A stretch of 64,000 nt of DNA from Mobula birostris (lineage: Eukaryota), in contig NC_092380.1 of NCBI RefSeq assembly GCF_030028105.1, forward strand, positions 70,119,717 to 70,183,716, read 5' to 3'. The translations under genes were made by a program, and so were the position numbers. The notes beneath the pieces were generated by a model that had not been told where the DNA came from, did not search any database, and was given only the letters and a program-made list of their open reading frames with translations. Below, one piece after another: positions 15,995 to 63,302 of the stretch. Position 1 is the first letter of the stretch. The number at the start of each line of letters is the position of its first letter.

Positions 15995-15995
<1 letters not shown>

Positions 15996-19404: not shown

Positions 19405-19410
19405 TTTATT
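19405..19410 (-). terminator. Candidate poly(A) signal AATAAA downstream of exon G
   Basis: TTTATT on + about 75 nt past the TGA at 19486-19488; the context is AT-rich, so chance occurrence is possible. Confidence 0.35.
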
Positions 19411-19485
19411 CTCAGTTATAATTGAAGTGCAGTCTTCAATTAAAAAGGATTCCATGCTCACTCCTCCAGAAAATACTATATAAAT

Positions 19486-19786
19486 TCAAATTAATATCAA
19501 GTCATACTGTTTCATATGTTCTTCCAAATTAAATTCAATTTGAACTTGGATGTGACATTTATCATTTGCTTTTGATGTATAAGTTAGCTCAGTGGTGAAA
19601 CTGCTAGCATTTTGAAATAGCTTGTTTGTAACAAACTCCTTTTCACAAAAGGATAAGCATCTCTGTACCAGAAGATACGAGCCTCTTCGAGGGCACATCT
19701 TTTAACATCGCAAGAAAGAGTTACTGGTTGACCAATTTTAGGACTTTTTGTGGGGCACTTTATTTCTGAAACCTTCTCCCATACAT
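19486..19786 (-). CDS. Probable last coding exon G: Ig-like domain with a -1 frameshift
   Basis: Acceptor ctctttttcagcag|AT (NAGNAG), phase 1. VWEKVSEIKCPTKSPKIGQPVTLSCDV...IFWYRDAYPF resembles exon F. One more T in the TTTT run near 19646-19649 would join it to ...KCHIQVQIEF...YDLILI*. Confidence 0.65.
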
Positions 19787-20099
19787 CTGCTGAAAAAGAG
19801 AATTTACAATAAATAAATGTGAGAACCTTAAAGGCATTTCAAAAATAAAGACCTATGTGAGTCAATATATATCACTGCACTCCCAAAGGCCTTATCTTAA
19901 TTCTTACAAATTTAAATGTTTACACTAAATCACCATTTGCCACCTGAACTACTGCAGTTGGGTGGATATGGAATATCATCCAGATGAAATATTTGCTGTC
20001 ATGGCATAGAATCATGGAATCATACAGCAGAGGAACAGGGCTTTGTCTCAATTCATCAACACTGACCAAGATGCCGGAAGTTAGACACATCTGCCCACA

Positions 20100-22078: not shown

Positions 22079-22120
22079 CTTCACTTGTTGCTTCATTGCT
22101 GTCATTTTCCTTGACAGCAT
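22079..22120 (-). pseudogene. 42-nt micro-exon homolog with defective acceptor (x-AVKENDSNEATSE-)
   Basis: Same intron context and donor (GAAG|gtaaag) as the 45-nt exons, but the acceptor reads cccttaca|AT with the G missing. Confidence 0.45.
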
Positions 22121-23313: not shown

Positions 23314-23596
23314 CTGGAAGGCGTAAATTGAATTCTTTCTTTTGAACTTTCTTTCTTTGTGAACCACCTCATATTTGATACAACTCCCATGGTCTGCTTT
23401 TGCTGGTGTAAACATTATGCTTGTAATTGATGAAATCAGACATTCTTCTGCAATCTCACGATGACCTGTTTTTGCGTCTTTCCATCGTTATACCACGTTA
23501 CTTTGATTTTCGCAGGAACACAGCCATTCAAGATGCTAAATGTTGCAGGCGATTTAGCTTGAAGAGTTCTGGATCACTTTTAATATCAGATATCTC
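23314..23596 (-). pseudogene. Decayed Ig C1-like exon H, copy 3
   Basis: EISDIKSDPEL / LNGCVPAKIKVTWYNDGK / MFTPAKADHGSCIKYEVVH, with frameshifts. Confidence 0.6.
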
Positions 23597-24877
23597 CTCT
23601 CAACTTAAACCAATGCTCCCTAGTTTTTCCATACCCTTTGATGGGAAAAAAGATTCATGCATTAGTCCTGACCTTGACCATATGATATTATACACCTCTA
23701 GGATCACCTCTCAGTCTCTGATACACCACAAATAAAATCCTAGCCTGCTCAGTCTCTCCTTATAACTCACCCCCTTGACTCCTAGCAACATTCTCAAAAA
23801 TCTGCTTTGCACTCTTCCTGGCCAATGTTATATTTTCTATAAGAGAGTAAACAAAGCTGTGCACAATACTCCATGTGCAGCATTACCAACATTGTGTACA
23901 ACTGTAATGCAATGCCCCAGCCCTCTACATTCAATGCTCTGATGAAAGGCCATCATGCCAAATACGCCTTCTTATTTACCTATCTACCTGTTATGTTCTC
24001 ATAGAGACATTAAAAATATCACATCCACTCTAAACACACTCATCTGGACTATGCTTCTCCTTTCTAGCTATTCTCAACACAGTGGCTCACATGCCAGTTT
24101 ACTCATCTTGCCTCGTCAGCATTTCATGATCTGAACCACACTCATTCCCTCCATCCCATTCATTAGAGAAGAGACGTACAGTGATAAGGGAGTTTATTTA
24201 TCAATGCAGAAGTCACAAATACACATCAGATGGAAGTGTGGGATGCATGCTTGGCAAGATTCTTGACAACAGAGTCAGTACTTATTTCCTTGTGGAAGAG
24301 AAGGGAAGTGATCTTGTTTTAAATTTGGAGGCCTAAAGTGATTACAAGCATTTTCAGGTCGGGAAGTTGGCACCAGAATCTACCATAAAAATCCAGCCCA
24401 CGTTAGACTATTTGAAGAGTGGACGACATGACAAAGCCACAAGGGAAAAGTAGCTCACCGTTAGGTGCTCAAGTGTTTGTTTGGAGATGACTACTTCACT
24501 GATATTTACTTATACGATCAGGAGAAACAGGAGGTATACAAATTACATGAGAAATTTAGTTTTGTAAAGATTAATCAGATTGTATTTGGCTCTTTCAGTA
24601 TATTTTTGTCATCATCTAAAGAACAGTAGAAATTTACTGGATATGGACACCCAAGAAATGAAGGCAGCAGACTGACAGAGCATTGAAATGGACTGGCAGC
24701 TTGTATACAACAGCTTAAATTCACCATTCCAGATAGCAATGCACATCTCATGTACAATAATATAAGATTCTACTTTGACCCAATAATGTGTTTCAGGTAA
24801 ACCATGTCCAGTTCAGGAACTTCCCAAAATGATTACTTTACCTTTATCTTTTGCTCTACTGCTGCCATTGGTATGTC

Positions 24878-25043
24878 GTGGGAGATGGAAGATCTCCGGC
24901 TATGTGCCCAGAAACCCGAGTGCTTTGGGCAGAGAGCTCGGAAAAAGTGACGCAATGGACTTTTAACATCATAAAATCAGAAAATTGTTTGTTATGTCTC
25001 CCCTCTCGCTGTGAAACAGGGACACCTCTTTTTTCCCTTATTT

Positions 25044-25074
<31 letters not shown>

Positions 25075-25357
25075 CCTGTGGTATATTGAATTAACTGAAC
25101 GAGTAGAACTTGGGGTACTGCAAGTCTGTATCTTTATCGATGCTTTGCTGCAAGCTTGAGTGTTCAGTGGAGGGGGCTGATGATTGTTTTACTGATGGAG
25201 GAGGCTTGTGCTTGAGAGTGGGGAGCTGGGGCGGCTTTGGGGTTCTAACATTTAACTGTCATTCATTCTTTGGGGCACTCCTGTTTTCCTGGATGGTTGA
25301 GGAAAAAAAAGAATTTCAGGATGTAGATTGTATACATTTCTCTGACATTAAACATAC
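24878..25357 (+). mobile_element. ~0.48-kb retroposon-like repeat with (GA)n, inserted in a micro-exon (duplicate at about 29126-29600)
   Basis: Interrupts micro-exon-homologous sequence; ends tgtatacatttctctgacattaaacatacc. Confidence 0.55.
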
Positions 25358-25408
25358 CTTTTGAAAAGGAGGAACTTCTGGAACCTTCCGTACGGGCAGA
25401 GTCAGAGT
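25358..25408 (-). CDS. 51-nt Ser-rich micro-exon
   Basis: Acceptor tttttttaacctacag| and donor AAAG|gtatgt; duplicate of 29601-29651. Confidence 0.5.
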
Positions 25409-26340
25409 CTGTAGGTTAAAAAAATGTAGTTTAAGAAAAGCTGACATTAGTCAAATCAAATTAGCTCTTGAAATTTAAAACATTGATCATTTCACCTAAC
25501 CAGATGTTAAACTGTAACCACCTAGAATTATCTAACCACAGCATTAGGAAAAAAACACACAGTTTCAGTCAATGTGAGGTTTGATATGAAGTAAATGGTT
25601 AAATTAAGATCTTGTTAAGTTTAAAATAAATGATCATTGCATCCATAACAACTTTATTGAAATGTGTCACATGAACACATATGGCTGTGCTGAGGACCTA
25701 CAAGTACCTGGGGGTGCACCTGGATAACAGACTTGAGTGGAGCACCAACACAGAGGCTGTGTTCAAGAAGGGCCAGGGTCCCCTCTACCTCATGAGAAGA
25801 CTAAGCTCCTTTGGAACATGCAGGCCTCCTTTTCTCCTGTTCTAACAGTCTGCTGTCGCCATACAATCTTCTATGTGGTAGTGTGCTGGGGCAATGGCAT
25901 CAACATAGGTGATGCCATCAGGCTCAATGAACTGTTCAGAAAGGCTGGCTCTGTCATAGGAGTCTAACTGGACACACGGGAGGCTGTGGTAGAACAATGG
26001 ACACTATGAAAAATCATGGCAATTCTGGACAATGATTCTCGCCCTCTATATGGCACCTTGGCTGAACAGAGGAGAATTTTTAGTAATAGACTAAGACAAC
26101 TGTTCTGTTACAAGAGTGCTATATAAATTCATTCTACCTTCGGCCATTAGGATCAATAATGAGTCAGCCAGCGGCGGGTAGGTAATGACCCCCTCCTGTT
26201 AGACTGTTTGAGGTAACTTATTTTTTATTTTTTCTATTTCCATTCTAATATTTCTATCTCTGCACTTTTAATGCTACTCTGACACTGTAAATTCCTTTGG
26301 GATCAATTAAGTATCTATATCTATCTACTACAAGATCTCC

Positions 26341-26631
26341 CTTGAAGGTGTAATTTGAATTATTTCTTTTGAACTTTCTTTCTTTCTATGTGAAACATCT
26401 CACATTTGATACAACACCCATGATCTTTTTTTGCTGGAGTAAACTTTATGCTTGTAATTGATAAATTCAGACCATCTTCTGCAATCCCAGGATGACATGT
26501 TTTTGCACCTTTCCATCTTTACATCATGTTACTTAGATTTTTGCAGGAAAATAGCCCTTCATGGAGATGCTAAATGTTGCAGACTTTTTACCTTGAACTA
26601 GTTCGGGATCATTTTTAATATCAGATATCTC
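26341..26631 (-). pseudogene. Decayed Ig C1-like exon H, copy 2
   Basis: EISDIKNDPEL...ATFSISMKGYFPAKI*VT*CKDGK / SIKFTPAKKDHGCCIKCEMFH...KLHLQG; parallels exon F (FNPTARDHGKEFKMQILH...LQLRG). Confidence 0.65.
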
Positions 26632-27233
26632 CTCTCAACTTAATCCTATGCTCTCTTGTTTTCAATTCCCTTTCAAGGGAAAATGATTTGTGCACTCACA
26701 ATGGAGGTCTAAAGCAATTACAGCCATGTTCAGGCATGGAAGATGGCACCAGAATCTACCATGAAAATCTAGCCTAGGTTAGAATATTTGAAGAGTGGAC
26801 CACTGACAGAGCCGAAGGGAAAAGCACATGATCCTTCGACAAATGCTCATATTTCATCGTAAGGTGCCAAAGAGTCTGGAAATGAGTATCCCACTGATTT
26901 TTACTCATCTGATCAGGAGAAATAAGAGGTATACAAATGACAGAAAGAGTTCACTTTTGCAAAGCTTAATCCGATCTGTATTTGGTTCTTTGAGTGTACT
27001 TTTATTATCCAAAGAAATGTGGAAATTTATTCAATTTGGACACCCAGGAAATGAAGGTGGCAGACTGACAGAGAATTGAAATTAGCTGGCGTCTTGTAGG
27101 TAACAGCTCAAATTCACCATTCCAAATACTAATGATTGTCTCATGTGTAATAATGTAAAATTCTACATTGACCTAATGATGGACTTCAAGTAAAACATGT
27201 CCAGTTCAGGAACTTCAAAATTGAACACTTTAC

Positions 27234-27278
27234 CTTTCTTTTTTTCTTTACTGCTGCCATCTTTCTTAGAGGTATGGT
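27234..27278 (-). CDS. 45-nt charged micro-exon (x-HTSKKDGSSKEKKK-)
   Basis: Acceptor ctttcttttttacctacag| and donor AAAG|gtaaag; phase 1-1, open. Confidence 0.7.
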
Positions 27279-29600
27279 CTGTAGGTAAAAAAGAAAGTAG
27301 TTTAAGAAAACCTCAGTTTCGTCAAATCAAATTGGCTCTTGTAAATTTCAAACATTAATTATTTCATCCAACCATATGTTAAACAACTCCAACCACTTAG
27401 AATTATTTATTCATGGCATAGGAAAAAAACGCTCCGTTTCAGGCAATATGAGGTTTAATATGAAGTAATTAGTTAAATTAATATTCTGTTAAGTTTAAAA
27501 TAAATGATCATGTCATCTAAATCAACTTTATTGAAATGTGCCTCATGAACAGACTGGTGCTCTGCATTGCTCCCTGTTACAATTGATGATGAGGACCTAC
27601 AAGTACCTGGCGGTGCACCTGGATAACAGACTTGAGTGGAGTGCCAACACAGCGGCTGTGTCCTGGAAGGGCCAGAGTCACCTCTACCTCTTGAGAAGAC
27701 TAAGGCCCTTTGGAATATGCTGGCATCTCTTTCACCTATTCTAACAGTCTAATGTCACCAGTACAACCTTCCATGCAGTGGTGTGCTGGGACAATGGCAT
27801 CAACACGGATGATGCCAACAGGCTCAATCAACAATAAAATTTAACATTGAATATCTCCTCTCAATGATTCCTAGTTTTTCCATTCCCTTGTTGGGAAAAA
27901 GATTCATACATTCATCCTGACTATGCCCCATATGATATTATACACCTCTTGGATCACCTCTCAGTTTCCAATACACCACAAATGAAGTCCTAACCTGCTC
28001 AGCCTCTCCCTATAACTCACCCCCTTGAGTCCTGGCAACATTCTCATGAATCTGCTTTGCAATCTTTCCAGCCAATGTTATATTTTCTATAAGAGAGTAA
28101 ATAAAGCTGTGCACAATACTCCATGTGCAGCATTACCAACATCTTGTACAAGTGTAATGCAATGCCCTAGCCCTCTACATTCAATGCTCTAATGAAGGGT
28201 ACCATGCCAAATATGCCTTCTTATTCACATATCAACCTGATATGTTCTCATAGAGACATTAAAAATATCACATCCATTCTAACACACTCATCTGGACTAT
28301 GCTTCTCCTTTCTAGCTATTCTCAACACAGTGGCTCACATGCCAGTTTACTCATCTTGACTTGTCAGCATTTCATGATCTGAACCACACTCATTCCCTCC
28401 ATCCCATTCATTAGAGAAGAGCGATACAGTGATAAGGGAGTTTATTTATCAATGCAGAAGTCACAAATACACATCAGATGAAAGCGTAGGATGCATGCTC
28501 GGCAAGATTCTTGACAACAGAGTCAGTACGTATTTCCTTGTGGAAGAGAAAGGAAGTGACCTTGTTTTAAATTGGAGGCCTAAAGTGATTACAAGCATTT
28601 TCACGTCGGGAAGTTGGCACCAGAATCTATCATAAAAATCCAGCCCACGTTAGACTATTTGAAGAGTGGGCGACATGACAAAGCCACAAGGGAAAAGCAG
28701 CTCACTGATAGGTGCTCAAGTGTTTGTTTGGAGATGACAACTTCATTGATATTTACTTAGGCGATCAGGAGAAACAGGAGGTATACAAATGACATGAAAA
28801 ATTTAATTTTGTAAAGATTAATCAGATTGTATTTGGCTCTTTCAGTGTATTCTTGTCATCATCTAAAGATCAGTGGAAATTTACTGGATATGGACACCCA
28901 ACAAATGAAGGCAGCAGACTGACAAGAGCTTTGAAATGGACTGGCAGCTTGTATACAACAGCTTAAATTCACCATTTCAAATACCAATGCACTTCTCATG
29001 TGCAATAATATAAGATTCTACTTTGACCCAATAATGTGTTTCAGGTAAACCATGTCCAGTTCAGGAACTTCCCAAAATGATTACTCTACCTTCATCTTTT
29101 GCTCTACTGCTGCCATTGGTGTGTCGTGGGAGATGGAAGATCTCTGGCTATGTGCCCAGAGACCCGAGCTCTTTGGGCAGAGAGCTCGGAAAAAGTGACG
29201 CAGTGGACTTTTAACATCATAAAATCAGAAAATTGTTTGTTATGTCTCCCCTCTCGCTGTGAAACAGGGACACCTCTTTTTTTCCCTTATTTGGCAGAGA
29301 GAGAGAGAGAGAGAGAGCCTGTGGTATATCGAATTAACTGAACGAGTAGAACTTGGGGTACTGCAAGTCTGTATCTTTATCAATACTTTGCTGCAAGCTT
29401 GAGTGTTCAGTGGAGGGGGCTGATGATTTTTTTGCTGATGGAGGAGGCTTGTGCTTGAGAGTGGGGAGCTGGGGCGGCTTTGGGGTTCTAACATTTAACT
29501 GTCATTCATTCTTTGGGGCACTCCTGTTTTCCTGGATGGTTGAGGAAAAAAAAGAATTTCAGGATGTAGATTGTATACATTTCTCTGACATTAAACGTAC

Positions 29601-29651
29601 CTTTTGAAAAGGAGGAACTTCTGGAACCTTCCGTACGGGCAGAGTCAGAGT
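29601..29651 (-). CDS. 51-nt Ser-rich micro-exon (x-SDSARTEGSRSSSFSK-)
   Basis: Acceptor tttttttaacctacag| and donor AAAG|gtacgt; phase 1-1, open. The donor lies in the 3' end of an inserted repeat. Confidence 0.5.
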
Positions 29652-30583
29652 CTGTAGGTTAAAAAAATGTAGTTTAAGAAAAGCTGACATTAGTCAAATC
29701 AAATTAGCTCTTGAAATTTAAAACGTTGATCATTTCACCTAACCAGATGTTAAACTGTAACCACCTAGAATTATCTATCCACAGCATTAGGAAAAAAACA
29801 CACAGTTTCAGTCAATGTGAGGTTTGATATGAAGTAAATGGTTAAATTAAGATCTTGTTAAGTTTAAAATAAATGATCATTGCATCCATAACAACTTTAT
29901 TGAAATGTGTCACATGAACACATGTGGCTGTGCTGAGGACCTACAAGTACCTGGGGGTGCACCTGGATAACAGACTTGAGTGGAGCACCAACACAGAGGC
30001 TGTGTTCAAGAAGGGCCAGGGTCCCCTCTACCTCATGAGAAGACTAAGCTCCTTTGGAACATGCAGGCCTCCTTTTCTCCTGTTCTAACAGTCTGCTGTC
30101 GCCATACAATCTTCTATGTGGTGGTGTGCTGGGGCAATGGCATCAACATAGGTGATGCCATCAGGCTCAATGAACTGTTCAGAAAGGCTGGCTCTGTCAT
30201 AGGAGTCTAACTGGACACACGGGAGGCTGTGGTAGAACAATGGACACTATGAAAAATCATGGCAATTCTGGACAATGATTCTCGCCCTCTATATGGCACC
30301 TTGGCTGAACGGAGGAGAATTTTTAGTAATAGACTAAGACAACTGTTCTGTTACAAGAGTGCTATATAAATTCATTCTACCTTCGGCCATTAGGATCAAT
30401 AATGAGTCAGCCAGCGGCGGGTAGGTAATGACCCCCTCCTGTTAGACTGTTTGAGGTAACTTATTTTTTATTTTTTCTATTTCCATTCTAATATTTCTAT
30501 CTCTGCACTTTTAATGCTACTCTGACACTGTAAATTCCTTTGGGATCAATTAAGTATCTATATCTATCTACTACAAGATCTCC

Positions 30584-30871
30584 CTTGAAGGTGTAATTTG
30601 AATTATTTCTTTTGAACTTTCTTTCTTTTTACGTGAAACACCTCACATTTGACACAACTGCTATGATTTTTTGCTGGAGTAAACTTTATGCTTGTAATTG
30701 ATAAATTCAGACCATCTTCTGCAATCTCAGGATGACCTGTTTTTGCACCTTTCCATCTTTATATCATGTTACTTTGATTTTCGCAGGAAAATGGCCCTTC
30801 ATGGAGATGCTAAATTTTGCAGGCTTTTTACCTTGAACTGGTTCGGGATCACTTTTAATATCAGATATCTC
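30584..30871 (-). pseudogene. Decayed Ig C1-like exon H, copy 1
   Basis: My translation: EISDIKSDPEP...FSISMKGHFPAKIKVT*YKDGK / IAEDGLNLSITSIKFTPAK / CVKCEVFH. It has stops and frameshifts, and both ends abut repeats. Confidence 0.65.
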
Positions 30872-31461
30872 CTCTCAACTTAAACCTATGCTCTCTTGTT
30901 TTCCATTCCCTTTCAAGGGAAAATGATTTGTGCACTCACAAAGGAGGCCTAAAGCAAATACAAGCATATTCAGGCATGGAAGATGGCACCAGAATCTACC
31001 ATGAAAATCTAGCCTAGGTTAGAATATTTGAAGAGTGGACCACTGACAGAGCCGAAGGGAAAAGCACATGATCCTTCTACAAATGCTCATATTTCACCAT
31101 AAGGTGCCAAAGAGTCTGGAAATGAGTATCCCACTGATCTTTACTCATTTTTACTCATTTACAAATGACAGAAAATGTTCACTTTGCAAAGCTTAATCCG
31201 ATCTGTATTTGGTTTTTTGAGTGTACTTTTATCATCCAAAGAAATGTGGAAATTTATTTGATTTGGGCACCCAGGAAATGAAAGTGGCAGACTGACAGAG
31301 AATTGAAATGGGCTGGCGGCTTGTAGACAACAGCTCAAATTCACCATTCCAAATACTAATGATTGTCTCATGTGTAATAATGTAAAATTCTACATTGACC
31401 TAATGATGGACTTCAAGTAAAACATATCCAGTTCAGGAACTTCCCACAATGAACACTTTAC

Positions 31462-31506
31462 CTTCCTCTTTTTCTTTACTGCTGCCATCTTTCTTAGAGG
31501 TATGGT
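31462..31506 (-). CDS. 45-nt charged micro-exon (x-HTSKKDGSSKEKEE-)
   Basis: Acceptor ctttcttttttacctacag| and donor GAAG|gtaaag; phase 1-1, open. Confidence 0.7.
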
Positions 31507-33216
31507 CTGTAGGTAAAAAAGAAAGTGGTTTAAGAAAACCTCATATTCGTCAAATCAAATTGGCTCTTGTAAATTTCAAACATTAATTATATCATCCAAC
31601 CATATGTTAAACAACTCCAACCACTTAGAATTATTTATTCATGGCATAGTGTAAAGAACTGTGTTGTAATTTATTGGATATGGGCACCCAAGGAATGAAG
31701 GCTGCAGACTGACAGAGCGTTGAAATGGAATGGCAGCTTGTATACAACAGCTCAAATTCACTATTCCAAATACTAATGCTTGTCTCATCTGCAATATAAA
31801 ATTCTACTTTGACCCAATAATGGATTTCAAGTAAAACATGTCCAGTACCATAATTACTTATTTGCATGCTAACTGGCCCCAACATTTTACACAATACTTT
31901 CAACTCTTTATGATATTTAAACTCCTCCTGTCAAAGTATTGTTCCAATCATTTCACCAACTGTGCCAGTTAAAAATTACACATTTCACACTGAAGATTTG
32001 TCATCAAGTTTGATCACACAGCTGCTAAACATCAGCGATACCCCCTCCCACACTCACGCTCCCCCACCCCTCCATTAAACTGCTGTTCTGCAGCAGAAAG
32101 CATCAGCTGAGAGAAATCCTTTCCACAATGATTGGAAGATTTTCTCAGTGACATCGGGTGTATTGGTGCTTCACTGCTTTGTTATTAACTATACATTCCA
32201 GCAAAGAACCCTCTAATAATCATTTGCCACTAGCACACAAAGGAATTTTAACTGCGCACAAATTATTGTCACCCTCTACCTAAGTTGGTAAGTTAAGTAT
32301 ATTTTACCATCGTACATAATCACATTCCCTTTTCTGGTTTCTGACTCAATGATGTGTATTATTTTATTTCTTTTAAACAATAAATAACAAAGAAGACTTG
32401 GTAGCTTATTATCCTTAGAATAGCTTCAGGTTTACTTCCACTTAAAAATTCAGTGCTGTTGTCACTGGACAACAAAATTGCAGTGCAAAATTTTTGCACA
32501 CAATGGTCATTACAAATTAGAGGGAACATTGTGCTCTAGTCCTTTTATTTCTGAAAATCTGTGACATTACCAGCCTCTGTTACTCCCCAGCAATGGGCTA
32601 CACCCAAGCCCTGCACTATTGCACTGGTTAGTTACCTTGTTGATCCAGCACTTTCCAGTGCCAGCCATCAGAGGCACAGTCTGCACACTGTCTCCATAGC
32701 TTCCTCTGCACCCGATCCGTTCACTGAGGCGATCACAGTGCTATTCTCACTGAGATGACAGTTCTAGGCACTCACTATATGAAACTGTGGCCAAGATGCT
32801 ATGCTCTGTGGGATAGCAGCAAATGATATACTGCTGGTCTTATCAGAATACAGAGTGTCAATCTCATTGAAACGTACAAAACTCTTATCTGTTTGGACAG
32901 GGATTAATGTGCAGTTGATGTTTCAACTGACTGATATACTGAGAACAAGGTATCAGTGCCTTAGCAGTTTGGATGTGAGAAAAAAAATTCATCATTCAGA
33001 GCTGTAAGGAAACTATGAAGCCATCTTCAAAGCAGAAATTTAAAGATATTGGAAAATAAAGTCTGTGGGGCCAGTACAGGGATATAATACTGCAATAAAA
33101 AAAGCAAAGCCTGGCATGATCTTATTGATTAGAAAAGCAGCCATGAGAAGCCAAATGGCTTAGCCTACTTCTTATGGTACAATGTGATTGCAGACTTGGT
33201 TAGAATGGGTATTCAC

Positions 33217-33546
33217 CTCTTAATTGCAGAAAGTAACTGGATGTGACAGACTTGCTTGAAGTTTCAGAATGAAGGATTTGCATTTTGAACTCTTTCCCAT
33301 GATCACGAGCAGTTGGGTTAAATGTCCAATGGGATGATCGTGAGTACAAACCACTGGAATCCTTTGTACTTTCTTCAGTGACTATTCCTGCTTGTGATGC
33401 ATCTTCAATTTTACTATCATCTTTGAACCAGAATATCTGATTTCCTTCTGGATAAAATCCATAAGCCGTGCAGGAAAGTTTTAAAGGCTTTCCTATTTCA
33501 GGGCAAGGTGGATCTGCCTTAATTTCTGAGATCTTTGGCAATGAAA
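33217..33546 (-). CDS. Ig-like exon F, copy 6 (type A)
   Basis: Acceptor ttttttatatctag| and donor AGAG|gtgaat; 330 nt, open; nearly identical to copy 1. Confidence 0.8.
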
Positions 33547-34987: not shown

Positions 34988-35062
34988 GAATTTCAAATTG
35001 ATTGTAGAAAAAACAAGTTCAGAAACAAAAAAGTAATCTTCTTCTAAAAACGTGTTACTTAC

Positions 35063-47920: not shown

Positions 47921-47933
47921 ATCAGTGTCTTAA
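47921..47933 (+). repeat. 13-bp target-site duplication ATCAGTGTCTTAA (second copy at 52617-52629)
   Basis: Exact direct repeat flanking the whole FAM102A+RTE insertion; single copy at the orthologous position in the other array units. Confidence 0.9.
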
Positions 47934-52616
<4,683 letters not shown>

Positions 52617-52880
52617 ATCAGTGTCTTAACAGTTTGGATAGGAGAAAAAAATTCATCATTCAGAGCTGTGAGGAAACTATGAAGCCATCTTCAAGGCAGA
52701 AATTGAAAGATATTGGAAAATAAAGTCTGTGGGGCCAGTACAGAGATATAACTCTGCAATAAAAAAAACAAAGCCTGGCATGATCTTATTGAATAGAAAA
52801 GCAGCCATGAGAAGCCAAATGGCTTAGCCTGCTTCTTATGGTACAATGTGACTGCAGACTTGGTTAGAATGGGTATTTAC

Positions 52881-53210
52881 CTCTTAATTGCAGAGAGTAA
52901 CTGGATGTGACAGGCTTGCTTGAAGTTTCAGAATGAAGGATTTGCATCTTGAACTCTTTCCCATGATCACGAGCAGTTGGGTTAAATGTCCAATGGGATG
53001 ATCGTGAATACAAACCACTGGAATCCTTTGTACTTTCTTCAGTGACTATTCCTGCTTGTGATGCATCTTCAATTTTACTATCATCTTTGAACCAGAATAT
53101 CTGATTTCCTTCTGGATAAAATCCATAAGCCGTGCAGGAAAGTTTTAAAGGCTTTCCTATTTCAGGGCAAGATGGATCTGCCTTAATTTCTGAGATCTTT
53201 GGCAATGAAA
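52881..53210 (-). CDS. Ig-like exon F, copy 1 (type A)
   Basis: Acceptor ttttttatgtctag|TT and donor AGAG|gtaaat; 330 nt, phase 1-1, open. LSCTAYGFYP...FWFKD; the F-strand Cys position is Met (KEFKMQILH). Confidence 0.85.
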
Positions 53211-54047
53211 CTAGACATAAAAAAGGAAGAAAAATACTTTAAACCAAATATGCAACTTAAAGAACATTACAATTTAAACCAAAACTGACAAGCATTTCTT
53301 AGTAAGTAGTTAAAGACTGAAAACTATTAAAAGCAATGAAAAAAAAAGCTATTGTCATGTCTTTCCTGATTTGGATTATTATTTTATTTCTAATTACTGG
53401 ATCTCACTGCTTTCTTGTGGGTTCTCAGCTGTTGTTGATTGCTCATTATTCTCTTGTTAAGGAATTAGCTTTCATCATCAGGACAGTCATTTTACATTGT
53501 TTATATATTTCATTTAGTAGTTAGAAGCACTGGTTATTTGAATCTGTCTTTTGTTAGAATGCTAACATTTTAATTAAAAAAAAGAATCATTCAGGAGAGT
53601 TCTTTAAACTATCCTTTATCCTTTAATTGCGTGAAATACTGTCAAACATCCTTGAAAAGTATAGTCATAAGGCGGCTAGTTTTGTTCAAATAGTTTTAGT
53701 TTTTACAATCAATAGCAATTTAAAGTTTTATACTTTTTCCTCTTAACTATATCTATGTATTAACTTTTATTTCTTTACCTACAAATCAATGAATTCACCC
53801 ATTTTAATTTACTTTCATTTTCTAAGGAATTCTCTGTTCAATCAAATCCACCATGTTCACCTTCCTTTGCAGTAATACAATTAGCCTGTAGGATTTGTGA
53901 CACTTAGCTTGCTGTCTTAGTAAATGGATGCCAAAAAATTACAAGGTATGTCCTAGTACCAACAGTTATCATTAGGCATCCATCCTTTATGAATTTCAAA
54001 TTGATTGTAGAAAAAACAAGTTCAGAAACAAAAGAAGTGTTACTTAC

Positions 54048-54359
54048 TCACTTCACCAGCTACCCAGTGAGTCTCTGTTGGCCTTGATAAGCTCTCATGT
54101 GCTATTTGGCATGTGTATTTTGTCTCAGTGTCAGCGCTGCTAAGAACAATCTGCAATTTAGCTGTGAAATGATAGAGTTCATCCTGTCCAATCACTGCAT
54201 CATTAACTTCAGAATTTTGTTGAATTTCTGAGCCATCTTTGAGCCATTTAACTGTGATATCTCTGGGGTAAAATGCACTTATTTGACAGCTTAAATTCAC
54301 AGGCACTTCTGCAATTAGTTTTTCTGCTTCACACTTTATAGTGCCTAGTTCTGGAGGAG
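54048..54359 (-). CDS. Ig C1-set exon (exon E)
   Basis: Acceptor ttttcttttccag|CT and donor GTGA|gtaagt; 312 nt, phase 1-1. NLSCQISAFYP...KWLKDG...YTCQIAHESL. Confidence 0.88.
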
Positions 54360-54694
54360 CTGGAAAAGAAAACAAGGTTTTAAACATGAGCAGATTTTCA
54401 AAAGTGGGGGACTAGATATTGCGCTTTCCATACGTAATTACTTATAGCTTTGTAAACTTTGGAAAAAGACATAAAATATAATTACTTAATTTATTAATTT
54501 CAGTACAATCCTACCCTATTGACTTAGCTTGCTATATTCTTAAATTACATCAATTATTTTCCCTTGTAACATTATTACTACCTTGTAACAGTAAGAGAAA
54601 TATGGCATCAAGACAATGCATTCATCAGAGGAGCCTCCAAATGAAATAAGCAATCTGGATCCTTTCTTGTTGCAAGGCTTGGATAATAGTATAC

Positions 54695-55075
54695 CTGTAA
54701 TTCTTAGGGCTATTTCTTTCTCTTGCTTGTCGTTAGTGGAGTGGTGCAGTATGCTACATAAGCACTGCGAGTTCTGGTCTTGCTGTATATTTGGCACAAT
54801 AACTAATACACTAGCAATGCTGTAAGTTTTGTCTTCATGCCCCACTTCACTGATGTAATGCTTTGCCTTCAAATTCATCCTGTTGTCATCGTGTTTGTTT
54901 GTCGTATTGTCCAGCTGCAACCGGACAAGTTCTTCCAAATCTTTATTCTTTCTCTTTTGTTGCCATATAATACTTAATGGTCTTGGTTTAAATCCACTGA
55001 CTGAACAAGACAAAGCCACAGGTTCCTTGTCTTTGATGAGAGGTGGCATCAAAATATTTAAAACCTTAGGTGGCA
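54695..55075 (-). CDS. Ig C1-like exon (exon D)
   Basis: Acceptor ttctcttttttaag|TG and donor ACAG|gtatac; 381 nt, phase 1-1. ALSCSVSGFKP...IIWQ...YSIASVL...CLCSILH. Confidence 0.85.
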
Positions 55076-55224
55076 CTTAAAAAAGAGAAAATGAAAAATT
55101 AATCTCACAAACTGAAATGCAAAGAAAGAAAAAAATACTGAATTGTTTTAAATGCTTAATGACTGTGTCCACCTGATGAAGAACTGTATTCAACATAACT
55201 ATCCACATCATTGACATAAGAGAT

Positions 55225-55395
55225 TCTACTGGTGCTGGAAATCTTGAGCAAAACATGCAAAACGCTGGAGAAGCTCAGCAGGTCAGGCAATATCTACGGA
55301 AGGCAAAACAGCTGACGTTTTGGGCCATGACCCGTCAGTACTCTTCACCATAGTTGCTGCCTGACCTGCTGAGTTCCTCCAGAATTTTGTGTATC
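55225..55395. repeat. Palindromic Penelope-derived short element
   Basis: ctggagaagctcagcaggtcaggca ... tgcctgacctgctgagttcctccag inverted arms. Confidence 0.65.
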
Positions 55396-55493
55396 CACGT
55401 CAATGTCAAATACCATATATGTTAATGAAAGACATTCAAAATGGAACCACAAAAGACAGCAATTAATAATTAAAGAAAATGTTTGCAATTTAC

Positions 55494-55934
55494 CTCCTTT
55501 AACATCTAGTGTCAGTGTCTTAGTTATAGGCTCTTTAAGTGCTTGATGTTGAACTTCGATACTTAACTCAGCCCCATCATCCTGAGAAATATCTGGATAT
55601 ATTCCGACACTGACTTCTACACTACAAATCTTTCGTGTGTTAATTTTGAATTCAGAAATCTGTGGTTTAAAGGATGCATCTTTGTCATCTGACTGAATGA
55701 GGATTTTTGTTTCATTACAATCCGGTCCATTTGTTGATACATACTGACAGCAGTTTTTTTTCCCATCTTTGTTGCTCCAATTCAGAAGCTGACATTTATC
55801 GTTCTGCTTCCTCTTTGCGTAAATCATGATTGTAATCTCATAAGGTCGAAATGAGCTAACCATCCAAGTGACTACGCTTTCTTCAAGATGTTTCAAAACT
55901 TGATATTCACTGCATCCAGTAATTTTTGGAGGAA
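55494..55934 (-). CDS. Divergent Ig-like exon lacking both canonical Cys, with a Cys-rich insert (exon C)
   Basis: Acceptor ttttgttttgactag|TT and donor GGAG|gtaaat; 441 nt, phase 1-1, open. VPPKIT...VVTWMVSSFRPYEI...ELSIEVQHQALKEPITKTLTL aligns by eye with the neighbouring C1-like exons. Confidence 0.78.
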
Positions 55935-56599
55935 CTAGTCAAAACAAAATAAGTAATTAACACTTAACAATGTAAATGTACTTTCTTGCATCCTCAGTTT
56001 TTATTGCCTTTCTGGAATTACAGAAATAAGACACAACTAGTGTAAACAGACAAGGTCAGAATTTCCATTAGTTTGTACCATTATTATTCAGCATATTACG
56101 GCTTAAAATAGGGAAACGAACAAAAATTGATTCCAGTGGAATTAAGAGTATTTTAAAAAATTAAACAATTTGCTTATTCCAAAACACTGGAGGGCTATTT
56201 ATTTATTTATTTATTTAATTTCTTACGTCCAAGGGAGTAAAAATCTTTATGTTGTATCTCCATCACAATGTACAAGCAATGAAGAGGGACAATGTGGGAG
56301 GATATTGCCCTAACATTAAAATTGTATACCTGATTGTTTTGTATACATGCACAGTCAGATAGACAATCAGATCAATGTACAGTCAGATATGCAATCAGAT
56401 CAATGTGTATTGATAAATCTAATTACTGATTTCAGATTTCTGTTAATTGCTTCCGTTGGTGAATTTTAAAGCAGGTTCTTCAAAAAATCTAGGTAGGAAA
56501 AACCTAGAAAATTTATCACTTAGCACAGTTTATTTCTTAAACATGTGAACATATTTTTTTCTCTACCCCCCAAATTCCTCTGCAGATAAAGCATTTCAC

Positions 56600-56830
56600 A
56601 AACAAGAGAAAATCTGCAGATGCTGATAATCCAAGCAACACACACAAAATCGTGGAAAACTCAGCAGGCCAAGCAGCATCCATGGAAAAAGGTAAACAAG
56701 CAATGTTGTGGGCTGAGACCCTTCATCAATCCTGAAGAAGGGTTTCGGGCTGAGACTTTGTCTATTTACTCTTTTCTATAGATGCTGCCTAGCCTGCTGA
56801 ATTCCTCCAGCGTTTTCTGTGTGTTCCTTC
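56600..56830. repeat. Palindromic Penelope-derived short element
   Basis: aactcagcaggccaagcagcatc ... gatgctgcctagcctgctgaatt inverted arms around a cccttca..gaagaaggg centre. Confidence 0.65.
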
Positions 56831-57329
56831 ATGCTCACTTCATGTCAAGAGCAAATTCAGCAAATGAATTGACAAAAAAAAAAGGATAAGAACCCATGAA
56901 ATGGGCCACATTTAGCGGTGCTCCACATTGTGCTATTAAAACAGTGCCCGATGACAGGTGAACCTGGAGGAAATTCAACTAGTTTCCTAGGGTAGAAGCT
57001 TATTGGGGAAATCAATCTACATTATCCAAAAGGAATTTTTGAAAATTGAATGATGTAATTTATTGCATCATAAAAATTAACTGTGCATCAATTCCTAATT
57101 CAAATGTGTTTGAAGGGAAATATAATTATTAAAAAAAATTCAAAATTAAATGGAGATTGCGTCTAGAGTATCAAATTCCATTCAATGGAGAAACACCAAG
57201 CAAGACTTTCTGTTGAACACCAATGGAGGAGTACAATTACTGCAGATTAGCTGTAATCAAAGCAAAAAGATCATCACTTCCCAATTTGGGGAAGAGATAC
57301 AAGAAGCAGTCAAAGAATCAGAACAGCCA

Positions 57330-57610
57330 TGCAAATTCACAGCCAGCAACCCAGGTTCAATGCTAACCTCTGGCACTGCCTGTGTGGAGTTTCCACACTG
57401 GCCATTATGCAGGAATTTTCTCCAGGTGCTTTGGTTTCCTTCCGCATCACCAAAAAAATATGCAGGCCAATAGGTGAATGAAATCTGTGAATTTCTCCAA
57501 GTGTAGGTGAATGGTAGAACTTGGGGGGAGCTAGTGAGAAATTGGGGAAAATAAAATGGGATTTTGTAAACGAGTGTTTGATAGCTGGCATGGACACAGT
57601 GAGCCAACTG
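57330..57610 (+). mobile_element. tRNA-derived SINE
   Basis: B-box-like ccaggttcaatgc followed by tgtgtggagtttcc...ttctccaggtgctttggtttcct. Confidence 0.5.
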
Positions 57611-58622
57611 GCCAGTTTCTTAGCTGCATCTTCTATGACTCAATGCACAAACTGCAACACACCAAAATGATTTCACTGTCTTCATATTACCTGCTCGAAA
57701 TCTCCACCAATAAGCAAGTAGTCCTGCAGCAAACAGGAAACATAACACAAATCCTCCTACAAATGCAGCTCCCACTGCTGCTGTTGAAGCTGATTCAGGC
57801 TCTGAAACTTAGAAAACCAAACCAAAAATATGAGCATTTAGACACACTAATAAACTCATCATCTTGAGACACTTACGAGTTTTTGCAAATTATAAATCAC
57901 CATTCATAAACCCTGTAAAGATTTTCAAGAAATTGAAACCATAATTGTGCAACTTATTTTCACTTTAAGTCATGTTCTGGGAATTCCATTCTGTAGTTTT
58001 GTTATTTTTCATATAATCTGGAATAAGTGGTGGGCTCAGAGTTACCAGCATCCCAACTTTTGACTAAACTTATTTGCAAATGACATCAGTTGCAAGTTGT
58101 GCTGTCGAATATTAAAATAGAAAGATTAAAAACTAGCCCTGGGTAAGGGTGGGGACAGAAGGCTAAAACGATGCCTGCAAACCTGCCTCAATTATTTTTG
58201 GGACATATTGAAAGAATATCTAACCCACTGGTGAAGACAGAGGCAGAAGGGCAGGGCCCTTCTTACTCAACCAAATCAAGTACAGGAAAGATAGACAGTG
58301 GTGTGCAGAAAATGAAATTATACGATAAAGGTCAAAACTAATTACTCAAGGCATGGAAAGAATCAGCAGTTGCAATGGCACAAACAGTTAAATGAGTTAA
58401 TGAGTAAGTAACTAACAGCCAGTCGCCAGGAGTCTCTACAAATCCAAAATGTGCTAGCCTACTGTTTATTTGCAGGCAAGACTCAACTTCTCAGCCAATA
58501 TCTTTATGTGGTGAAATAACAAACAATGAACCTTTGATTTAAATCAGTGGAACATTTTTAAAAAACATTGTTACAAATATTGCTACATAGTATCCCCAAC
58601 TTATTCAAATAATGGAACATAC

Positions 58623-58943
58623 CTTCAACTGTGAGTTTCACCTCTTGTGAAGGTTCGTCTGGAAGGGACTGATGTCTCACTGTACACTTGTATACATTAC
58701 CATCATCATTCGGAGTTGGTTCAATTCTAATATTACTGGAAACATTAAACGTTCCATCATTGTTAGAAACTGCAGCTCCAGTGCAGACATGTCTTTCCAA
58801 TCTCTCAGTTTTCCCTCTGGATATCTTTTCCCAGAAGATTTCATGCTTCTGAGGATAAAATTCCGTAGCGTCACACCGGACAGATTTCTCTGTACCATTC
58901 AGAATGGTAATGTGTTGTGTGGATAGAAGCACCTTTGGCTTAG
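58623..58943 (-). CDS. NCR3LG1-like: Ig C1-set exon (exon C1)
   Basis: Acceptor ttttaatacag|CT and donor GAAG|gtatgt; 321 nt, phase 1-1. RCDATEFYP...FWEK...NNDGTFNVSS...YKCTVRHQSL matches the C1-set pattern and the B7-H6 C domain motif DGTFNVTS. Confidence 0.9.
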
Positions 58944-59324
58944 CTGTATTAAAAGGCAAATCCAACCTTGTCAGATAGGATGGAGTGTATTATCATAAAT
59001 ATCTAAAGCCAAGTCTAAGATATTGCTATGTTTACATAAACAAAATGTACCACTTTCCTTCCTTCAATTATTGCTCCAAAACACAGGATTTCCCTTTACT
59101 ATTACTCCTGAAAGATAATTCACTTGTTCAACATTCAATGCAGTTCCATGCGAGAGTTTTAAGATTATTTATTCCTTCTGATCCAGAGTCTCCAAATAAT
59201 AAATTAACAGACAGTGGAGAGGTACATCGGTAATTCTGCAGAGACTATACGCATTATGGATAGTGTAGACAATTGCCAAAGGATATGGCAGGACATAGAT
59301 CAGTTATAGATATGGGCAGAGAAA

Positions 59325-62014
59325 AGCTTTTACCTGGCCTAATCCACTTAGACCAGACTGGATTTATTCAACAAAGACAAACACAGGACAACATAAGGAG
59401 AACTCTGCACATATTAGAACAGGTTAATAAGAACGAGACAGAGACAATGGTAGTAGGATTGGACGCTGAGAAAGCTTTTGATTCGGTTAGTTGGGCATTC
59501 CTATACAGAGTGTTAGGAAGATTCGGCTTTCAAGAAAAGTTTATTAAAGTAATTCAGACTCTATATGACAGCCCTACAGCCCGAATTAAGATAAATGGGG
59601 ACCTCTCTGACTCCTTCATCTTAGAGAGAGGCACTAGACAGGGATGTCCAATTTCTCCTCTCCTTTTTCCGCTATATATTGAACCGCTTGCCCAACTAAT
59701 AAGACAGAGCGAAATCGTAAAAGGTATCAAGGTGGCAGGAATTGAACAGAAAGTGGCGTTATTCGCAGATGATGTTTTGGTCTATCTGAGTGAACCAGAA
59801 AAATCATTTATAGGTTTGTTTACGCTGTTGGATGACTTTGGGAAAATATCAGGTTATAAAATAAATGTAAAGAAAATGCAGGTTATGTCCCTAAATTATA
59901 CACCATCCAAAAAATTGCAGGATACATACGATCTTAAGTGGGAAGCTAAATCATTAAAATATTTAGGAATAACCCTGCCGAAGGATCTTTCAACACTGTC
60001 ACAGGTAAATTATGGGCCATTAATCTCAGAGATAAAAGCAAATATGCATAGATGGAATCTTATCCCCTTTTTAAGTTTAAATTCAAGGATAAATACTATA
60101 AAAATGAATATTCTTCCTCGGTTATTGTATCTTTTCCGTACTTTACCGGTGGAGGTGGATGATAATCAATTCAGGGAATGGGACGAATGGATTTCCCGCT
60201 TCATTTGGCAAGGAAAGAAACCTAGAATTCGATATAACACCTTACAGTTAGGGAAGGAAGGAGGAGGTATGGTTCTTCCTTGCCTGAGAAATTATTTTTA
60301 TGCCTCACAGATAACCCCTCTGTTATATTGGTGTAATAGGGAATATAAGGCTAGATGGAAGGAAATAGAATTTGGATTAGTTGACAGTTTTCCTCTTCAG
60401 GCCTCAATAGCTGACAAAGGATTGATGGCCCAGTTGGAAAAATTTAAAAACGCTTGGATAAATCTTACATTAAAAGTATGGCAGAAGGTGGTTAATTCAT
60501 GTGGAATTAATAACATGTTAAAACTCTTTAGATGGTGTGCATATGATACCAAATTCCTTCCCAACAGAGGAGATAAAAGATTTGAGCTATGGATAAAGAA
60601 AGGTCTTACAACCTACCTCTCATTTATAGATAAAAGAGTATTACAAAGTTTCCAAATCCTGCAGGACAAACATGGCCTAGAACATAATGACTTTTTTAGG
60701 TACCTTCAAGTACGAAACTATGTTAACCAGAGTTGTAGATATGCAGACCTATCAACAGTAGAATTAGAATTTTTCAAGATTCTGAATTCGGCTTGCAGTT
60801 CAATACCTAGTAAATCAGTTTCTCGATTATATAATGCACTCTCCCATGCTAAAAATGTAAATACACTGTATATTAAAGAGAAGTGGGAGAAAGAAGCGGG
60901 GTTGGTACTTTCAGAGGAGGCTTGGGAGAAAATCTGCAGCTTTCAATGGTCCTCGACTAATTCTTTGACTTGGAGAGAACATTGTTGGAAAAACATTATA
61001 AGATACTTCAAGACCCCATATCAGGAAAAATATAAAGATACAAATGTGATGTGTTGGTGAAGGTGCGGCTCCAAGGAGGCAAATCATTTTCATATTTTTT
61101 GGGATTTCCCTAAATTAAGTCTATTTTGGGAAGGTATTCATAGAACACTAGTTAAGGTACTTAGGTCCCAGATACCTCTGAACTTTGAGACGCTCTATTT
61201 GGGGCATGTATTGTTTCTTGAACAGAAGGAAGATATAAAGTTGCTGCAGGCCCTCTTAGCGGCAAGTAAGAAATCAATCACTAGAAAATGGCTAAATCCA
61301 ATACCACCTACATTAGAAGATTGGTGCGAAATTATCTTGGAAATATTTAAAATGGAAAAGTTGACTTACTCCCTGAGAACTCAAAAAGAAAAATTTTATC
61401 AAATCTGGAATAAATGGATTGAATATATAACCCCAATGCGAGCAGACTTTAGATGACTCTCCTAATGATTTATATTGCTCTTCTCATCAACACAGTAATA
61501 TTGCTAACGTAAGCACCCCTAGTCTAAATGTTTGTTTTTTTTGTTTTCTTTTGGAAAATAGAGAATTAACACAAGTAAAGGGAAAGATTTGGGAAAGGGA
61601 TAAAAAATGAAAAAATTAAGTAAGTAAGTACATAGGGATTGGATAATTATGTCTGCGGGCAGGAGCAAGCATGAACAAATTAGGATATAAACACCTACAA
61701 CGGTTGATACATAGGCTTATATACAACATTTTGGACCAGTGGAAATGGTCCAGAAGGGTTATATGGAAACTATTATTACCATTTTTCTTAACAACTAATT
61801 CCATTACTTAGCCTAATAGGTTAGATTTACCACAGTACATAATTATTTATTTAAATGTTTATTTTCCTTTTATATCATCTCAATGTGTACTTAAGAATGT
61901 ATAAATAATTGTAGTTTTATACATATAAAAAAATGGAAAAGGTTATATGTGTGAAAAAAGTACATGATATTTGTGAATTCCTTATCCAAATAAAAATAAA
62001 ATTTAAAAAAAAAA
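59325..62014 (+). mobile_element. 5'-truncated L1-type LINE nested in a CR1 fragment; 16-bp TSD GATATGGGCAGAGAAA (59309-59324, 62015-62030)
   Basis: RT open for about 580 codons ([31 protein letters not shown]), then C-terminal pieces, 3'UTR and poly(A). Confidence 0.92.
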
Positions 62015-62830
62015 GATATGGGCAGAGAAATGGCAGATAGAGTTTAATACAGCTAAGTAATAAGTTTCACAATTTGGGAACTCAAATATGAAGGGATAGT
62101 ACATTCTTAATGGCAGAATCTTTAACAACATTGATCTACAGAGGGATTTTGTGACCCAAGGCCACAGTCTCTTAAAACGGCACAGGTTGATAGGGTGGTA
62201 AGGAAGTACATGGCACACTTGTCTTTATTAGTTGAGGCATTGAGGTCAAGAGTTGATAAATTACTTTTGCAGCTTTATGAAACTCTGCTTATGCCACATC
62301 TAGAGCACTGCTTCCAGTTCTGGTTGTCCCCATAATAGGAATAGAGTGGAGGGTTTGAAGAGGGTACAGAAGTGGGATGTTGCCTCAGCAAAAGAGCATG
62401 TGCTACAAGGAGAGAATGGACAAACTTGGAGCAACACACAACGTGCTTGGTCAGGCAGCATCTATGAAGGGAAATGGACAGTCGGTGTTTCAGATTAAAA
62501 CCATTCAAATGAACTAGGGTTGCTTTCCCTGGGGTTTCAAGGTGAGGGGAAACCTGATGGAAATTTATAAGATTATGAGAGGCAAAGATAGAATAGACAG
62601 CTAGTATCTTTATCCCAGGGTCAAAGTGCCTAAAGCTGACAGGAGGCAAGTTTAAAGATGACGTGAGCAGCAGGTTTCCTTTCTTTTAATAAAAAGACAT
62701 AGAGCAGTGGGTGCCTGCAATGCACTGCCAGAGGGGGTAGCAGAGGCAGATGTGATAGATGCATTTAAAAAACTCTGAGATAGACACATGAATGTGCAGA
62801 GAGTTGAGGGGTAAGGACATTGTGCAGACA
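62015..62830 (+). mobile_element. CR1 3' fragment (continues 59190-59324)
   Basis: KWQIEFNTAK-like sequence, ctggttgtccccataataggaa, and tggaatgcactgccagag-like 3' motifs. Confidence 0.65.
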
Positions 62831-62960
62831 GAAGGGATTACTTAACTTACTAACTAATTACTAGTTTAATTAGGTTGGCACAACATCATGGGCCAAATGG
62901 CTTGTTCCTATGCTGTGCTGTTCTCTGTTCACAACAGGTAATGTTTTAGAAGTCTCTTAC

Positions 62961-63302
62961 CCAAGACCACAATTTGTGAACTCTTTTCCGCTCTGTCAGG
63001 AGTGACAAGTACAACACAAATGTATTCTCCTGCTTCATTTAATTGGATATTTGGAAGATAAAGTGAAGCATCTCCTTTCTGTAATTCCGTTTCAAATATT
63101 TTGGCTCCATGTCGTCTAGCCACAGCTTGTCCTGCATTAAAGGTGTAGATTTCTTTCCTTTGGGATCCATACAACCACAGAACACCTACATTTGATAAGT
63201 CAAGAAGTGGCGTTCCAAAATCAGTCACTTTACATTCCAAGGTAACGTCCGTATTCAATAATACATCCTTTGGACTTCTAAAAATGGTTATATCCAACGT
63301 TT
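62961..63302 (-). CDS. NCR3LG1-like: Ig V-set exon of an NCR3LG1/B7-H6-like multi-Ig gene (exon V)
   Basis: Acceptor ttttctgtttgcatttag|AA and donor TTGG|gtaaga; 342 nt, phase 1-1, open. TLECKV...VLW...GDASLYLPNIQLNEAGEYICVVLVTP closely resembles the B7-H6 V domain ([26 protein letters not shown], recalled). Confidence 0.88.

Follow-up and report, generated by a model that had tools for sequence, protein, structure and literature searches.

A B7-H6-like gene of Mobula birostris that carries a transmembrane exon ahead of a long array of Ig-like exons

A 64,000-nucleotide (nt) stretch of Mobula birostris DNA (contig NC_092380.1; termed the window, in whose forward-strand numbering all coordinates are given) carries a B7-H6 (NCR3LG1)-like gene on its minus strand. 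Between 19.5 and 63.3 kb, it comprises 11 intact immunoglobulin (Ig) exons (V, C1, C, D, E and F1 to F6), four micro-exons and a terminal exon, in addition to a transmembrane (TM) exon located between C1 and C. These exons probably constitute one gene, in which a V-C1-TM head is followed by an Ig array, a linker and a truncated last Ig domain, and which would mainly encode a type I membrane protein with a cytoplasmic array.

Exon organization and the transmembrane exon

Reading of the exon borders showed that every intact exon has an AG acceptor, a GT donor, a length divisible by 3 and phase 1-1. The first-pass annotation of this DNA had listed eleven intact Ig exons, four open micro-exons and a last Ig-like exon with GT-AG sites and internal phase 1-1, and had left out the two degenerate copies D' and E'; this exon set proved real. 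The complete join is open; it encodes 1,429 amino acids (aa) when the TM exon is included and 1,390 aa when it is left out, in agreement with the roughly 1,400 aa estimated before. Searches with tblastn using the exon translations against the window placed V at 63.3, C1 at 58.9, C at 55.9, D at 55.0, E at 54.3 and F1 at 53.2 kb, followed by four protein-identical F copies at 46.0, 43.5, 41.0 and 38.5 kb, and F6 at 33.5 kb. The remaining matches are D' (35.9 kb), E' (35.4 kb) and an F-like piece at 19.7 kb.

Pfam assigned V to the V-set, and C1, D, E and F to the C1-set. Exon C has no Pfam match, but its AlphaFold model, built from a 20-sequence alignment, is an Ig sandwich with a mean predicted local distance difference test score of 82 and one disordered insert of ~20 aa, and Foldseek matched it to Ig domains of the T-cell receptor (TCR) and SYG-1. 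The canonical disulfide is missing from this domain, and the Cys pair is absent in every species aligned. The micro-exons m1 to m4 (45, 51, 45 and 51 nt) encode charged, Ser-rich segments. The terminal exon has a 1-nt frameshift relative to paralogues, visible as two tblastn frames, which truncates the last domain. The same truncated end in a Mobula hypostoma gene model rules out an assembly error; judged from these two sequences, the frameshift is a real shared feature of the paralogue. No leader exon was found in 63303-64000; it lies beyond the window.

A hydrophobicity scan of the minus strand revealed, between C1 and C at 57.77 kb, the segment AAFVGGFVLCFLFAAGLLA. It belongs to a 117-nt exon (57691-57807) with good splice sites, whose translation, VSEPESASTAAVGAAFVGGFVLCFLFAAGLLAYWWRFRAG, is a standard membrane span with basic residues behind it. 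The span scores 2.37 in a 19-residue Kyte-Doolittle window, with WWRFR next to it. The TM exon is 95% identical to residues 263-301 of the Mobula hypostoma protein P0180, and its position is conserved across more than 50 homologue clusters; nearly all homologue gene models keep it. A single TM segment directly after the C1 domain, as expected of the B7-H6/NCR3LG1 family, is present; the earlier statement that the minus strand has no hydrophobic exon was wrong.

The splicing of this region is documented by contigs assembled from RNA runs of two studies. Between 52.9 and 59.0 kb, 8-13% of the 31-mers of the window were found in these runs. Contigs of 1.6-4.1 kb placed on 52950-58949 contain the joints 58623|57807, 57691|55934, 55494|55075, 54695|54359 and 54048|53210, and those of all four runs read C1>TM>C>D>E>F1 in frame at the predicted borders. 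The E donor used in RNA is 54048, which moves the earlier border by 9 nt. Every contig that bridges C1 and C in the four runs carries the TM exon, and no C1>C joint skipping it is among the joints listed for these contigs. As the TM exon is present, conserved and included in RNA, a secreted or decoy protein as the default product, originally suggested as possible for the gene, is unsupported.

Splicing within the F array was observed with exact matches. The F2-type and F6-type exons are represented by exact-match contigs at a depth of 100-475; within 33150-38650 these are contigs of the F2-type exon in runs X2 and X9, and an exact 178-nt contig of F6 in X2. The joint 38577>38248, which goes back 330 nt (45-nt short side, no mismatches, run X9), corresponds to an F exon spliced to the next F. 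A second joint, 33546>38248 (F5>F6), has 20 nt on one side and is hence ambiguous with F>F. In run X2, the reverse complement of a loose end after F5 (at 38248) reads ACCATACCTCTAAGAAAGATGGCAGCAG, which indicates a splice to the HTSKKDGSS micro-exon. The spliced RNA that the first-pass annotation called for was thus seen exactly for the C1/TM/C/D/E/F1 and F>F joints, although the contigs on the F1 side derive from a paralogue or allele, as discussed below.

Of the 31-mers of the F2 exon, 73% are present in X2 and 57% in X9, compared to ~0 in X3, X4 and X5. More generally, F2-type words were found in X2, X9 and X7, and are essentially absent from X3, X4 and X5 (same studies, both organisms sampled). 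A polymorphic F array, either present or absent or variable in copy number, could explain these differences, as could expression that depends on the tissue. Run X2 contains the exact F2-type and F6-type exons, yet no contig with the F1 letter of the window at 53008; F1 of the window haplotype may be skipped or different in the X2 animal. Separately, the TM-C and C-D introns contain two short interspersed repeats (55150-55550 and 56550-56950) that reach an RNA contig depth of 10^4-10^5 and give hundreds of chimeric joints. They belong to highly expressed families and could mislead junction calls.

Family relationships and related architectures

Comparison against solved structures, rather than a tree, was used to judge the closeness of V and C1 to B7-H6. 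The top match of V is human B7-H6 (E-value 1.5e-13), whereas for C1 the human B7-H6 chains rank 2-4 (5e-14), behind one IgG hybrid chain (3.8e-14). Consistently, V is followed by a C1-set and not a C2-set domain, with Pfam scores of 27.3 bits for the V-set (cut-off 26) and 41.2 bits for the C1-set (cut-off 21). The B7-H6/NCR3LG1-like identity first assigned to the two domains is therefore upheld.

A phmmer search with exon E against 1.84 billion representatives yielded many long multi-Ig proteins. Using blastp of the window exons in combination with a TM scan, more than 50 clusters (50% identity) were found to share one order, in which a signal peptide is followed by V, C1, TM (located at ~aa 230-330), C, D, E and F, in many cases by additional Ig domains, and then by a charged linker and a last Ig-like domain. 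With blastp of each single exon, the collinear order was seen in the models P0005, P0017, P0011, P0009, P0180 and P0184. The collinear homologues comprise rays (Hemitrygon, Hypanus, Mobula, Pristis, Narcine, Amblyraja and Leucoraja), other fishes (sharks, the chimaera Callorhinchus, Polypterus and Erpetoichthys, Latimeria and Protopterus) and tetrapods (frogs, salamanders, a caecilian and alligator). Most of them are automatic models named "uncharacterized", but the NCBI name "natural cytotoxicity triggering receptor 3 ligand 1", likewise assigned automatically, is found on models of Ambystoma, Bombina, Rhinophrynus and Alligator. Automatic gene models with this architecture are already public. 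Searches of the full-text literature did not turn up an account of a B7-H6 with a post-TM Ig array, though one may exist in the 2012/2015 work of Flajnik and Ohta.

At the sequence level, the closest relative found is the "uncharacterized protein" LOC134353705 of Mobula hypostoma (P0180, 1,366 aa). It has the same exon order, four micro-exons (m1 at residues 1236-1250), six F domains, four of which are near-identical, and the truncated end ...AYPFVKRSLLQTS.FKMLAVSPLS. The aa identity per exon ranges from 85 to 99%, with 95% for C1, TM and C, and 99% for the F2-type domain; the window is ~5-15% divergent in V, C1, C and D. LOC134353705 differs in that the isoform compared omits exon E, and it is an automatic model with no published description. 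The gene is probably the orthologue of LOC134353705, that is, a lineage-expanded paralogue in a non-mammalian B7-H6 (NCR3LG1)-like cluster. The existence of this 1,366-aa model agrees with the initial view of a single giant modular gene. Separately, V, with 85% aa identity to the Mobula orthologue, is markedly more divergent than C1, TM and C (95%), which would fit fast evolution or polymorphism of a receptor-binding domain.

Variation in the tail is not restricted to the manta. Isoforms that skip the 15-aa micro-exon occur in Hemitrygon, and in Hypanus LOC132397552 (1,408 aa) the E-F pair is repeated four times, indicating that tail-exon amplification occurred more than once in the family. 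Together with the F>F and F>micro-exon joints, these models bear out the earlier idea that the length varies by exon copy number and skipping.

In mammals, B7-H6 extends little beyond its TM segment, and the human protein has 454 aa with a short non-Ig tail that was reported to be Gag-like. The window gene shares with human B7-H6/NCR3LG1 (PDB 3PV6, 6YJP and 4ZSO) an ectodomain of V-set and C1-set domains followed by a single TM segment. It differs in the 9-10 Ig-like domains after TM, with the charged micro-exon linker and a terminal Ig-like domain. Butyrophilins, such as BTN3A1, have a V-C ectodomain, a single TM segment, small in-frame tail exons and an intracellular B30.2/PRY-SPRY β-sandwich. 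The B7-related V-C ectodomain, the single TM segment and an intracellular β-sandwich module make them a working analogy for inside-out control, but the butyrophilin module is B30.2/PRY-SPRY, whereas the tail exons of the window are Ig-like; none of the exons scanned gave a Pfam match to B30.2 (PRY/SPRY).

The elasmobranch UrIg2 (Sci Adv 2025, PMC12227049; PDB 9DMX) consists of a non-rearranging V and many C1-type domains, which expanded by exon duplication, are near-identical and differ in copy number between species (PMC12227049). The window gene resembles it in this order and in the growth of its C1-type domains by exon duplication. However, UrIg2 has a VJ-type V domain, a C-terminal TM segment and all of its domains outside the cell, whereas the V of the window is B7-type, ending in ...SSQIVVLG with no J motif (FGxG), and TM follows the second domain. 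UrIg2 gives a weak PDB match to C1 (1.7e-8). Membership in UrIg/UrIg2 is ruled out by the non-VJ V domain and the TM segment after C1.

Topology of the Ig array and rival explanations

The TM scan of family homologues revealed one strongly hydrophobic span with basic residues at its C-terminal side, and no second hydrophobic segment. In the post-TM arrays of 32 family members, N-glycosylation sequons are at chance level, with 134 observed versus 137.7 expected (0.97; 0.57 per 100 aa), whereas they are enriched in V-C1 of the same 32 proteins (78 versus 59.2 expected; 1.32). By comparison, the observed/expected ratio is 1.58, with 1.39 sequons per 100 aa, in 24 classical ectodomains with multiple C1 domains, taken from the same hit list. 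The chance-level sequons, the basic residues after TM and the lack of a further hydrophobic segment argue for a cytoplasmic array. We thus somewhat favor, for the main product, a TM-containing type I form with V-C1 outside and the Ig array in the cytoplasm, whereas a secreted form that skips TM is plausible as a minor product.

We propose that a leader exon outside the window would provide a signal peptide, as in the orthologues, ahead of V, C1 and the 39-aa TM exon. The V-C1 head would be displayed outside, presumably for an NKp30-like receptor, while the 9-10 post-TM Ig-like domains and the charged linker would reside on the cytoplasmic side. Skipping of the symmetric TM exon would lead to secretion of the whole chain. 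The F exons are spliced serially, with the F2-type exon also joining directly to a micro-exon; protein length would vary with F-exon copy number and exon skipping. The F array grew through recent tandem duplication of ~2.48 kb, and a D-E-F block was copied as well, leaving D' and E' dead.

Several observations weigh against this proposal. The RNA contigs indicate presence, but neither isoform ratios nor how many F exons a molecule contains. A divergence of 3-6% separates the long bridging contigs from the window, and they match a neighbouring paralogue; their variant letters form a mosaic of F1, F2 and F6, and after one F they continue into the micro-exon GNTDKKDVSN, which is the sequence of Mobula hypostoma LOC134353704. 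The divergence, the mosaic letters and this micro-exon indicate that the long contigs come from a neighbouring canonical paralogue or a divergent allele, and the letters and micro-exon rule out their use as direct evidence for the window copy. We therefore infer the inclusion of TM in the window copy from two sources, this paralogue or allele and the Mobula gene model. Moreover, for Hemitrygon (X6, aa 287-324) and Bombina (X2, 34 aa), NCBI predicts isoforms from which precisely the TM exon is missing. Finally, the Cys-Trp-Cys residues of D and E are 95-100% conserved across 19 species and ~450 million years, as expected for disulfide-bonded secreted or lumenal domains. As a test of topology this conservation is ambiguous, because domain F keeps an unpaired B-strand Cys as strongly, and the argument is further weakened by domain C, which has no pair in any species.

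The predicted isoforms and the cysteines also favor a product that is mainly a secreted or decoy multi-Ig B7-H6-like protein, with the TM exon skipped constitutively or predominantly. Such a protein could form readily, as the symmetric TM exon (phase 1-1) preserves the frame on skipping; a Scyliorhinus torazame model has no TM exon, and neither a C-terminal anchor nor a GPI (glycosylphosphatidylinositol)-like tail was found. Nevertheless, the inclusion of TM in all C1-C bridging contigs, its retention in nearly all homologue models and a sequon density of the array unlike that of classical extracellular Ig arrays make this explanation unlikely. A secreted form is possible only via skipping of the TM exon, which is predicted in Hemitrygon and Bombina but not observed in the RNA contigs of the window.

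The window copy might instead be a decaying duplicate, namely a transcribed pseudogene of the neighbouring canonical paralogue, in which F amplification is neutral junk. The truncating frameshift of the last domain, the dead D' and E', the insertions of long interspersed nuclear elements (LINEs) in introns and the unseen F1 variant in run X2 would agree with decay, as would the comparison of F1 with F2, where the proportions of nonsynonymous and synonymous differences (0.066 and 0.043) give no sign of purifying selection between F types. By contrast, 11 Ig exons, the TM exon and four micro-exons are all open with intact splice sites, the F2-type and F6-type exons are expressed with exact matches, and F2 to F5 are identical over 330 nt, compared to 97.5-98.8% identity of the surrounding ~2.48-kb units. 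The truncated end and six-F layout are common to Mobula hypostoma and thus outlasted the species split, which leaves the pseudogene improbable. We give hardly any credence to a split into two genes, namely a short B7-H6 gene made up of V, C1 and TM, and a separate multi-Ig gene downstream of it, even though mammalian B7-H6 is that short and a repeat-rich intron of 1.8 kb separates TM from C: the in-frame RNA joint 55934>57691 in four runs rules it out, no leader or start exon was found between TM and C, and the homologue models are all collinear. The earlier judgment that the exons do not belong to several genes holds.

C1-set domains are regarded as hallmarks of extracellular adaptive-immune molecules, such as Ig, TCR, the major histocompatibility complex, tapasin and B7-H6. 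A B7-H6 family with 5-10 C1-set domains after the membrane anchor, conserved for ~450 million years, would imply either that the C1-set fold resides in the cytoplasm or that an unusual splice switch decides between a membrane-bound and a secreted protein. Such a family would also reveal the tail of B7-H6 before its replacement in mammals, and provide a testable example of a protein length tuned through exon copy number. As to annotation, models of fishes and amphibians labelled "uncharacterized", "titin-like" and "hemicentin-like" would belong to the NCR3LG1 family. In a broader scenario, for and against which we see about equal grounds, ancestral B7-H6 would have possessed a cytoplasmic C1-set array, kept from chimaeras to crocodilians, as the first C1-set domains working in the cell; a symmetric TM cassette would switch between membrane and secreted forms, and very recent duplication of an exon would have multiplied one tail domain in a single manta/devil-ray paralogue.

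Duplication history and other features of the window

Peculiar to the window copy are the six-fold amplification of F with serial splicing, the dead D' and E', and the truncated terminal domain. Five nt distinguish F6 from F1, and both stem from the separate D-E-F block duplication, whose copies are 93-97% identical. D' and E' were rightly omitted from the original exon list, as the defects given in Table 1 show. The micro-exon unit is duplicated as well, over 4.25 kb (23611-27430 versus 27862-31659, 95% identical). Weak F-like relics lie at 23314-23439 and 26384-26631 on the minus strand, one per copy of this unit (tblastn E-value ~0.01-0.02), which suggests that the linker region may have been built over decayed Ig exons.

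Table 1. Coordinates of the exons, pseudo-exons and a major insertion in the window
Feature	Position	Strand	Evidence and remarks
V exon, B7-type V-set domain	62961-63302	-	342 nt; phase 1-1; AG/GT borders; Pfam V-set 27.3 bits
C1 exon, C1-set domain	58623-58943	-	321 nt; Pfam C1-set 2.2e-10; RNA joint 57807>58623 in four runs
Transmembrane exon	57691-57807	-	117 nt, 39 aa; phase 1-1; RNA joints on both sides, four runs
Exon C, divergent Ig-like domain	55494-55934	-	AlphaFold2 and Foldseek; RNA joints on both sides; aligns with 19 homologues
Exon D, C1-like Ig domain, conserved Cys-Trp-Cys	54695-55075	-	Pfam C1-set 4.4e-5; RNA joints 55075>55494 and 54359>54695
Exon E, canonical C1-set domain	54048-54359	-	312 nt; Pfam C1-set 5.5e-16; RNA joints 53210>54048 and 54359>54695
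Exon F1, C1-set-like, without F-strand Cys	52881-53210	-	Pfam C1-set 5.4e-8; RNA joint to E
Exon F2, first unit of ~2.48-kb tandem array	45703-46032	-	330/330 nt same as F3-F5
Exon F3	43222-43551	-	tblastn; borders; 330/330 nt same as F2, F4 and F5
Exon F4	40741-41070	-	tblastn; borders; 330/330 nt same as F2, F3 and F5
Exon F5	38248-38577	-	Exact-match RNA contigs in X2 and X9
Exon F6, F1-type	33217-33546	-	325/330 nt same as F1; 178-nt RNA contig, 0 mismatches, X2
Micro-exon m1	31462-31506	-	45 nt, HTSKKDGSSKEKEE; matches X2 loose end after F5
Micro-exon m2	29601-29651	-	51 nt, SDSARTEGSRSSSFSK; 100% tblastn match to P0180
Micro-exon m3	27234-27278	-	45 nt; in 4.25-kb duplicate of the m1-m2 unit
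Micro-exon m4	25358-25408	-	51 nt
Terminal exon, coding part, last Ig-like domain	19584-19790	-	1-nt frameshift near 19640; stop 19584-19586
D' pseudo-exon	35709-35934	-	5' half missing; tblastn spans aa 53-128 of D only
E' pseudo-exon	35087-35373	-	Acceptor AG>GG; 25-nt 3' deletion versus transcripts; in-frame stop
RTE-type LINE, near full-length, not coding for the protein of the gene	47921-52629	+	F1-F2 intron; reverse-transcriptase open reading frames; GC 0.53-0.55

The open reading frame (ORF) 48325-48678 on the plus strand, ahead of the RTE-type LINE, resembles the N-terminus of an EEIG1/FAM102-type protein. A second, AT-rich LINE at 59273-61456 (plus strand) lies in the V-C1 intron, antisense to the gene, with a reverse-transcriptase ORF of 595 aa and an 85-aa ORF. 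The window has no flanking genes beside the B7-H6-like gene, and positions 1-19,000 contain no other cellular gene but only LINE and retroviral fragments. These include, at 7000-11000 (minus strand) and 16013-16429 (plus strand), pieces of LINE endonuclease and reverse transcriptase as well as an ORF whose CC motif resembles that of a retroviral Env-TM.

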